64,000 nt of DNA, taken from sequence record NC_070882.1; one strand, given 5' to 3'. The notes under the pieces are model-generated. The model was not told the DNA's origin and searched no databases. It saw only the letters and a list, made by a program, of their open reading frames with translations. Below are positions 52,553 through 59,229 of this stretch, in pieces (the first letter of the stretch is position 1; each line of letters begins with the position of its first letter). The translations under genes and the position numbers were made by a program.

Positions 52553-52705
52553 TGAAAAGTGACTGTTTACAGAGGGGTGACTGTATAGAACTTCACGTTC
52601 CTACTCCCTTACCGTCTAAGGCCTCCCCCATTAAAGGTACTTACCAAAAGACTAAATCATACAATTTGCAACATAAAGCCCGCCTTTCGGCAGGCTCTAT
52701 TGAAA

Positions 52706-52791
52706 TGGTAGGAACAGAGGGACTCGAACCCACAGTGTCTTACGACGGCTGGACCTAAACCAGCTGGCTATACCAATTCGCCTATGTTCCC
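52706..52791 (-). tRNA. tRNA-Leu(TAG)
   Basis: Loop TTTAGGT, long variable arm, GGTTCGAGTCC, CCA. Confidence 0.93.
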
Positions 52792-52848
52792 ATGTAGAAT
52801 ATGCTTAACGCTAATCCTTACATATAATCACTACGCCAGTATTTGTTT

Positions 52849-53787: not shown

Positions 53788-53847
53788 AACGATTACCTTT
53801 CGTCAAAATCATAACATATAACCTCCCCGAAGGGAGGCTTTATGTTT

Positions 53848-54150
53848 TTAATCTTGATTAGCTAACCATTCTTTCAAAAGGGCTACAAAATTAACGGGTT
53901 CTTTTACAACTTGACCGTTTCTACAAACGGGTATCTTTTCAATGCTGGGGTCATCCATAATCGGACGATACCATTCTTGAAATTTCTTATTCAGATCCCG
54001 ACTAAAAATTTCCGTAATGAGTGCGCCAAGTCCATCGTCTTGGTACAGTGCGTTTTCGTTCACGATTGATCCTCTGTAGTTATAGCAAGTTTTACAAGGG
54101 CAAGTCTTCGAGTTACCCAAGCCGTAATGAAATCTCCACGTGTAGTACAA
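53848..54150 (-). CDS. hypothetical protein
   Basis: CPCKTC motif; start uncertain because of overlap. Confidence 0.55.
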   Translation of the reverse strand: MYYTWRFHYGLGNSKTCPCKTCYNYRGSIVNENALYQDDGLGALITEIFSRDLNKKFQEWYRPIMDDPSIEKIPVCRNGQVVKEPVNFVALLKEWLANQD

Positions 54151-54350
54151 TCGTAACTTACATGTGCTTGATATTCAGGATGGTTAATATTGAATTTATC
54201 TATGACCTTAGACCGTAGATAGTCTTCTGCTGCTTTTGTTGACATCCCTTCTGTATTTGGGAATTCTTCTATAAGTAGCTCTGACAACATTTTATTTCTT
54301 GAAGCTAGGTCTATATCAGCCTCAGTATGACATGGCATGAAAGCTGTCAT
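54060..54350 (-). CDS. hypothetical protein
   Basis: RBS GAGGT. Confidence 0.6.
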   Translation of the reverse strand: MTAFMPCHTEADIDLASRNKMLSELLIEEFPNTEGMSTKAAEDYLRSKVIDKFNINHPEYQAHVSYDCTTRGDFITAWVTRRLALVKLAITTEDQS

Positions 54351-54436
54351 GATTACCTCTTTACATCCTTTGACATACTGTTATATAGCCCAGTATAAAA
54401 CGACATAAAACTCTCCTTATCGGAGAGTCGTATATC

Positions 54437-54678
54437 GGACATTAAAACCAGTCTCTTTTTGATCGTAATGTCCATCGTGAGGTGACAGTTAGTGGAACTG
54501 AAGAGACACCTTTCGGTATGGGCGGCCCATTCGACTTCCCTCAATCATCGGCTTGCCACTATTAGCCTTTGGTTTCCGGGTGCTATAAATGGTCACATCG
54601 AAATACTACAGTCTGCTGGACCTAATATGAGATGTTTCTACAGGTAGCTTTCGATGAAGTAACTTTGTTCGTTACATA
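54437..54678 (-). ncRNA. candidate pseudoknotted ncRNA of about 240 nt
   Basis: ORF-poor; 8-bp stems and a 7-bp loop-stem pairing; TATGTA at its 5' end and a family hairpin at its 3' end. Confidence 0.5.
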
Positions 54679-54700
54679 TTGTAATCAACTGGGTATTATT

Positions 54701-54849
54701 TTAATCAAGCGTACAGAGTACACCGATTAAACGGAACGGGCAAGTCAAGACCCACCAAATAGCTTCGAACACAGCGCCAATGATTTCACCAACTACATTG
54801 AGGGCTTGTCGCCCTTTATGCTGTTTTTTTCTTTTTTGTCATCAGTCAT
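54701..54849 (-). CDS. small membrane protein split by a -1 frameshift (49 aa if joined)
   Basis: MTDDKKEK + QHKGRQALNVVGEIIGAVFEAIWWVLTCPFRLIGVLCTLD; break in an A7 run. Confidence 0.45.
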
Positions 54850-54851
54850 TA

Positions 54852-55562: not shown

Positions 55563-55624
55563 GTTATTTCCTTTTGTAATAGTTGACATAAAGCTCTCCC
55601 CGAAGGGAGAGCACTATGACGCAT

Positions 55625-55713: not shown

Positions 55714-55756
55714 GAAATCTGATATAGTCTTACATAGTATTACTATACAAGTATTT

Positions 55757-57852: not shown

Positions 57853-57895
57853 TAATTCATTACCTACATATTAGTATACATAGGGATTTATAATA

Positions 57896-58989: not shown

Positions 58990-59084
58990 ATTTCTTCTCT
59001 ATAAATAGAGACTCTTCAGTACTTTTCAACATAAAGCCTCCCGATGGGAGGCATTATGCTCATCAACACAACAAGGAGAAAGAT

Positions 59085-59229
59085 ACAACTTACCAACTGA
59101 AAGGAGGGGACCACAACAGGGAGTCTTACTTCCTAGAAGCCAGCTGGAAGGGTTGCTGGCTCCGGCGAGCTGTGGTCTATGTAAAAACGAGGAGTGACGT
59201 CTCTACATATCATTACATAGTGGGTAAGT
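59085..59229 (-). ncRNA. candidate small pseudoknotted ncRNA
   Basis: gaccaca/tgtggtc and agccagc/gctggct stems plus cttcc/ggaag loop pairing; strand inferred from context. Confidence 0.4.

Follow-up and report, generated by a model that had tools for sequence, protein, structure and literature searches.

The species 1 and 2 RNAs of bacteriophage T4 (rnaC and rnaD) are small, stable RNAs about whose function little is known; they are located inside a co-oriented cluster of phage tRNA genes and are cut from a tRNA precursor. GOLLD and ROOL, two RNAs of complex structure, frequently occur in phages in the vicinity of tRNA genes. Short terminator-bounded RNAs have also been mapped in phiKZ-like phages, none of them with a known function and few with a supported fold. 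They include sRNA005 of phage 201phi2-1 and the phiKZ sRNA upstream of gp182, which are short structured chimallivirus RNAs reaching from a transcription start site (TSS) to a terminator and conserved across genera (PMC11512511). The phiKZ short RNA designated 3'UTR_PHIKZ298 (270595-270485, minus strand), first detected by Grad-seq (Gerovac 2021; PMC10914365), has an identified TSS and was confirmed by northern blotting (Putzeys 2024, PMC10914365), and it was read by Putzeys et al. as a product of the PHIKZ297 5'UTR (PMC10914365).

The window considered here, a stretch of 64,000 nucleotides from record NC_070882.1, matches at 100% identity its source, the Pseudomonas phage vB_PaeM_PS119XW, a phiKZ-like jumbo phage of the genus Pawinskivirus with a 301.5-kb genome; window position 54300 is record position 291843. 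An initial annotation of the window had proposed an uncatalogued, structured and pseudoknotted noncoding RNA among the phage tRNA genes at 54437-54678. The proposal is borne out by covarying helices, by the lack of a match in Rfam and ARAGORN and by the lack of a conserved ORF. Sequence comparison makes it very probable that the flagged DNA is a genuine gene, situated beside the tRNA genes, whose product is a folded RNA that does not code for protein.

Genomic context and extent of the candidate gene

The seven tRNA genes and every annotated gene around the candidate RNA are on the minus strand, and the tRNA genes are interleaved with genes for Kelch-repeat virion proteins. The flagged span lies within a 350-nt stretch that contains no conserved ORF and is flanked by genes for a 96-aa and a 48-aa protein (Table 1). 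The 48-aa ORF, encoding a small hydrophobic protein, is kept in the phages HHBS36_1, phiHQ, BRkr and HPP-Temi, where most substitutions fall at third codon positions. In PS119XW a poly-A run near 54820 is two A longer and puts the ORF out of frame, the frameshift being either a sequencing error or the mark of a pseudogene.

Two further observations concern the tRNA region. The tRNA-Leu(tag) gene at 52706-52791 (minus strand) is given as a pseudo-tRNA in MN103543, yet it is a normal tRNA by ARAGORN and Rfam (48.9 bits). At a place where PS119XW has a Kelch-protein gene, HPP-Temi has one for an HNH endonuclease together with additional tRNA genes (Phe, Thr), and reshuffling is therefore ongoing in the tRNA region.

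Table 1. Features of the candidate RNA gene and its immediate neighbours (window coordinates; helices in 5' to 3' order of the RNA).
Feature	Position	Strand	Description
48-aa small-protein gene	54701..54847	-	upstream neighbour, outside the RNA; unannotated in MN103543
Promoter-like motif AATAC-N14-TATGTA	54673..54697	-	abuts the first hairpin; predicted +1 = G at 54675
P1 hairpin	54659..54675	-	GUAAC/GUUAC, 7-nt loop; PhiPA3 GUAGC/GCUAC, A-U to G-C
P2 long stem	54596..54656	-	8 + 5 bp; variable apical part with conserved UCUCAY and GCAGACU
Core	54552..54588	-	UAUAGCACCCGGAAACCARAG ... UAGUGG.AAG, nearly invariant
GGGAAGUCG and P4 hairpin	54521..54540	-	GUCG/CGAC, 4 bp, kept in PhiPA3; one U.C mismatch in PS119XW
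P5	54480..54511	-	AGGUG/CACCU; encloses internal loop UCUCUU and P6; PhiPA3 CGAAU/GUUCG
Pseudoknot, 5' strand UCUCUU	54501..54506	-	pairs with AAGAGA 54452-54457
P6 hairpin	within 54480..54511	-	CAGUU/AACUG, loop CCACU; PhiPA3 UUUGU/ACAAA, loop kept
P7 two-part hairpin	54437..54473	-	8 + 5 bp; 9-nt loop holds AAGAGA (54452-54457)
Intrinsic terminator	54405..54429	-	8-bp stem, loop GAUAA, then UUUUAU
96-aa gene	54060-54350	-	other flank of the candidate RNA

The candidate RNA unit runs from about 54675 down to about 54405 on the minus strand, roughly 270 nt. The unit is longer than the span originally flagged, and its terminator lies just beyond that span. The 242-nt span folds no better than its shuffled versions (z = -0.34 for the plus and -1.08 for the minus strand), while the full minus-strand unit (54404-54677) gives z = -2.66, none of 200 shuffles folding as well, and its plus strand gives z = -1.07.

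The strand was also read from the pattern of substitutions. All seven one-sided transitions in the pairs lead to G.U on the minus strand, where the plus strand would have A.C; with the test restricted to the helices listed in the initial annotation, five of five do so, and this subset of the seven is free of prediction bias because those helices had been defined from a single sequence. The plus-strand reading was rejected on the wobble test together with the fold z-scores, so the pairings, originally given in plus-strand coordinates, belong to a minus-strand transcript.

Six close relatives cover the region at 84-99% identity (HHBS36_1, PA1C, phiHQ, phiLBG22, BRkr and HPP-Temi). HPP-Temi has three 1-nt indels inside the RNA region, and the small CDSs annotated over it vary from one phage record to another; the region is therefore not coding, and a protein-coding reading was rejected on these grounds. 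Identity to HPP-Temi is 87.6% over the RNA region, 65-77% over four neighbouring genes and 85% over the adjacent 48-aa ORF, a comparison that speaks for selection on the RNA. A 17-aa ORF beyond the terminator was discarded as well, its substitutions in HPP-Temi being, by inspection, all non-synonymous. The CDSs annotated over the RNA in PhiPA3 (ORF 368, plus strand), HPP-Temi (minus strand) and HHBS36_1 (minus strand) are mutually inconsistent and probably spurious.

Promoter-like motif and terminator

The initial annotation gave no boundary signals; a putative promoter of the type found at the tRNA genes and a predicted terminator can now be placed just outside the flagged span. Exactly three perfect copies of the motif AATAC-N14-TATGTA occur in the 64-kb window, against 0.05 expected, a count that is partly post hoc, the pattern having been derived from these very sites. 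One copy is that of the candidate RNA; the remaining two precede tRNA-Leu(tag) and tRNA-Tyr by 20-30 nt. At the candidate RNA, neither block varies in BRkr and HPP-Temi, while 4-5 spacer bases are changed, and the two-block motif was also found in PhiPA3 and phiKZ. The late motif of phiKZ is TATG, with G as +1, and its middle promoters carry AAanTTACc near -24 (PMC4666361); in 201phi2-1 a middle promoter drives a tRNA gene (PMC11512511). The start predicted for the candidate RNA follows from the TATG rule of phiKZ.

Upstream of tRNA-Leu(tag), tRNA-Tyr and tRNA-Met stands either (A/T)ATAC-N14-TATGTA or ATATGTAG by itself, at 52819-52843, 55731-55755 and 57864-57871, respectively, all on the minus strand. 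A further copy of the tRNA-type promoter, at 59203-59210 (minus strand), is about 210 nt upstream of tRNA-Leu(taa) and is followed by a terminator near 59040; the two may mark the ends of a further RNA, about 150 nt long.

At the other end, PhiPA3 has a different, GC-rich terminator stem in the same place, and pairing of the stem is maintained between the PS119XW and PhiPA3 lineages by compensatory changes. The gene downstream of the RNA has its own TATG motif (54374-54383), and a TATG immediately behind a terminator recurs elsewhere in the window and in phiKZ. In many terminators of the window (e.g. 53820-53839, 55593-55612 and 52660-52690) (U)UUAUG comes straight after the hairpin, so that the U-tract runs into the TATG start motif, as in phiKZ. 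Terminator-plus-TATG is a compact stop-and-restart punctuation, general in these genomes.

Secondary structure

All seven complementarities listed from the single sequence are present at their plus-strand positions, and the comparison with relatives confirmed most of them as helices that covary, two small hairpins excepted. Between the two lineages, many compensatory changes preserve the pairing of six helices and of the terminator stem. P7 (ggacatta/taatgtcc on the plus strand) has two compensatory and three wobble changes and no broken pair within the clade, the informative sequences being effectively only four and each covariation count therefore small; the PhiPA3 counterpart has a stem of 3 + 7 bp and likewise a 9-nt loop. 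The hairpin gtaac/gttac (P1), the long stem (P2) and cagtt/aactg (P6) gained compensatory changes against PhiPA3. In P2, both bases of three pairs differ from PhiPA3, wobbles occur as well, and A-U has become G.U in BRkr and HPP-Temi. Over the 5' half, four pairs are changed on both sides between PS119XW and PhiPA3, a number reached by 3 of 500 shuffles, and 95.8% of cells pair, compared with 29-49% in slid controls.

The two exceptions were replaced by other helices. The proposed acc/ggt hairpin is not conserved, P5 being formed instead, and atggg/cccat is broken in BRkr and HPP-Temi, the conserved element in its place being P4. The first P4 of RNAalifold and its full P3 were not kept in PhiPA3 and were dropped. 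The near-invariant parts of the molecule are the core around AUAGCACCCGGAAA..CCARAG and the block GGGAAGUCG. P3, predicted within the core segment (54552..54588), is conserved only in part, and the central region has no consistent fold.

The pseudoknot keeps its 6 bp in all sequences, with one compensatory change of U-A to G-C in PhiPA3 (UCUCGU:ACGAGA), and its context is the same in PS119XW and PhiPA3. An inter-loop match of 6 bp arises in 32% of loop shuffles, i.e., at chance level when judged from a single sequence. The pseudoknot first proposed as H-type is thus retained as a pairing kept in homologs with one compensatory pair, but its geometry is different, joining the P5/P6 internal loop to the hairpin loop of P7.

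The core segment UAGUGG is, moreover, complementary to CCACUA of the P6 loop, perfectly in PS119XW, BRkr and PhiPA3 and with one wobble and one mismatch in HPP-Temi; because of the latter this pairing is offered as a hypothesis, and the fold may carry two pseudoknots.

Homologs in other phages

Covariance models were made for the 3' half, the 5' half and the core. The two half models gave self-matches only in the PS119XW genome, and no paralogs of the RNA were found within the window. A distant homolog is present in PhiPA3, of the genus Miltoncavirus: the 5'-half model matched 301411-301533 on the minus strand (40.7 bits, E = 1.7e-6), and the match of the 3'-half model (301262-301410, minus strand, 19 bits) directly adjoins it on the same strand. 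This copy has a matching promoter layout, TATAC-N14-TATGTAGC, a terminator and a fold z of -2.44. It is located beneath the plus-strand ORF 368, which is probably spurious, and immediately upstream of a gp297-type gene. Since the proteins flanking the PS119XW and PhiPA3 loci are unrelated, the RNA has been conserved as a module of its own.

The 5'-half model did not match in phiKZ, 201phi2-1, Phabio, Noxifer, Viktualia or EL, nor did the core model in the first five of these; in all six, the 3'-half model gave weak matches only, which were terminator hairpins. Pattern and flanking-protein searches of IMG/VR returned PhiPA3 itself only, and one apparent IMG/VR homolog proved to be a chance match. 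Metagenome contigs yielded chance matches only, and scans of GTDB genomes gave no true homolog either.

In phiKZ, the gap that precedes PHIKZ297 is in synteny with the PhiPA3 copy; the promoter motif occurs here too, as TATAC-N14-TATGTAAG, its G being at 270596 by our own count. TATG with an ATAC block 14 nt upstream is common to PS119XW (as a sequence motif only), PhiPA3 and phiKZ. By analogy, the published phiKZ short RNA from this gap lends experimental support, in a relative, to the putative promoter of the candidate RNA. The body of the phiKZ RNA gave no significant match to any of the three models, the weak 3'-half matches in that genome lying elsewhere. Within the gap (phiKZ 270365-270648, minus strand), a second hairpin-plus-terminator module is found downstream of this 111-nt RNA; its homologs in PhiPA3 are P7 and the terminator, but it has no GAGAC loop.

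Proposed mode of action and alternative readings

The reading that we prefer, with a probability of about 0.6, is that of a minus-strand gene for a structured, pseudoknotted noncoding RNA of about 270 nt, which would be released by termination and act through its folded core. The non-virion RNA polymerase of the phage would transcribe it together with the tRNA genes, starting at G 54675 of the TATG motif, and most transcripts would stop at the terminator near 54405, yielding a discrete stable RNA; a fraction might continue into the genes downstream. The RNA may then work through its core, to which a protein, a ligand or another macromolecule would be bound, and not as a simple antisense RNA; the compact fold and the invariant unpaired core are the reasons for favouring action as a folded particle over that of an antisense seed RNA.

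A discrete folded RNA is the most likely product; a less likely one, and a tentative proposal, is a cis-acting leader whose fold senses a protein, a metabolite or a condition and sets the frequency of termination. Like a riboswitch-type attenuator, it would thereby control how much transcription reaches orf96, orf71 and the gene for the Kelch virion protein. The order of promoter, pseudoknotted fold, terminator and gene is indeed the layout of a termination riboswitch, P7 is only 7 nt from the terminator, and the PhiPA3 homolog is likewise immediately upstream of a gene. Short phiKZ RNAs of less than 250 nt, including the PHIKZ297 counterpart, often come from premature termination in a 5'UTR, with two modes of read-through (PMC10914365), and the published reading of this counterpart as a 5'UTR product would, by analogy, favour the leader. 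Set against these points, inspection revealed no antiterminator pairing common to PS119XW and PhiPA3, the two lineages have different genes downstream, each of these genes has its own TATG motif past the terminator, and the terminator-plus-TATG arrangement is widespread punctuation in these genomes. It is doubtful, too, that the element is a sensor, riboswitch-like or a site for a phage or host factor, governing termination by the non-canonical phage RNA polymerase, or else a catalytic RNA; were it true, the termination sensor would be the first of its kind that is specific to nucleus-forming jumbo phages.

The invariance of the loops CCACU, AAGAGAC and GAACAAA between variable stems, together with the RNA's own promoter and terminator, would suit a regulatory sRNA that base-pairs through these loops with phage or host mRNAs. 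Such a role is nevertheless improbable: the conserved loops have conserved internal partners, UCUCUU and UAGUGG, and the candidate RNA far exceeds typical seed-bearing sRNAs in size and compactness. Still harder to sustain is the view that the region is no RNA gene at all and is instead what remains of a coding gene or pseudogene, acts as a signal at the DNA level or is transcribed from the plus strand. Small CDSs have been annotated here in HPP-Temi and HHBS36_1 (minus strand) and in PhiPA3 (ORF 368, plus strand), but these ORFs disagree among records and are broken by 1-nt indels, the wobbles fit only RNA pairing on the minus strand, and the nearby genes and tRNAs are all on that strand. The least credible alternative is a degenerate form of a known catalytic or housekeeping RNA, whether RNase P-like, tRNA-like or a self-cleaving ribozyme. 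The position among tRNA genes and the possible two pseudoknots might suggest it, and GAGGGAAGUCG and ACCCGG recall what we take to be CR-I and CR-V of RNase P; the two motifs are, however, in reverse order compared to RNase P, neither the PS119XW nor the PhiPA3 version matches an Rfam family at E ≤ 10 beyond noise, and ARAGORN finds nothing. Readings as RNase P-like, SRP-like, CsrA-sponge or Hfq (ARN) elements were motif-based only, had no model support and were set aside.

The discrete folded RNA preferred here offers a testable architecture comprising seven helices, a pseudoknot that covaries, perhaps another pseudoknot and an invariant core of 20-35 nt, with a defined promoter-like motif and terminator and with homologs in two genera infecting PAO1-type hosts. 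The architecture and the homologs thus make it a tractable entry to the roles of structured RNAs in nucleus-forming phages. Several phage records, moreover, have small-ORF annotations, probably spurious, that the analysis corrects.

Comparison with known RNAs

The only gathering-level matches of Rfam 15 in the window were the seven tRNAs. At E up to 10 the PS119XW, PhiPA3 and phiKZ versions gave noise only (10-18 bits), and among the Rfam 15 families GOLLD, ROOL, T-box, RNase P, tmRNA and the riboswitches did not match the candidate RNA. ARAGORN likewise found seven tRNAs in the window and no tRNA or tmRNA within 54353-54851. The expectation that the RNA forms no tRNA cloverleaf agrees with the empty ARAGORN and Rfam results, and the Infernal/Rfam check that had been suggested places the candidate in no catalogued family.

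The T4 species RNAs and GOLLD/ROOL, named as precedents in the initial annotation, are apt as analogies, but a match was found neither to T4 nor in Rfam. With filters off, the two half models reached at best 5-6 bits in the T4 tRNA region, none of it at rnaC or rnaD. Like these T4 RNAs, the candidate RNA lies inside a tRNA gene cluster and on the same strand; it has no sequence or structure similarity to them, and, unlike them, appears from its flanking motifs to have its own promoter and terminator. GOLLD and ROOL are much larger than the candidate RNA. Both sRNA005 and the sRNA upstream of gp182 are at a different locus, are smaller and are described without a pseudoknot or a conserved core (PMC11512511).

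The phiKZ RNA 3'UTR_PHIKZ298 differs from the candidate RNA in its length (111 nt versus about 270 nt) and in having neither the conserved core nor the GAGAC loop. In common with PhiPA3, the phiKZ locus has only the promoter and the last ~110 nt, comprising a P7-like hairpin, AAAUCGGCAU, the terminator and the leader. The protein encoded downstream in PS119XW is unrelated to the gp297 type, unlike the situation at the phiKZ and PhiPA3 loci. The phiKZ RNA is, like the candidate RNA, intergenic, terminator-bounded and on the same strand as the tRNA genes, and in position it corresponds to the PhiPA3 homolog, each of the two being followed immediately by a gp297-type gene.
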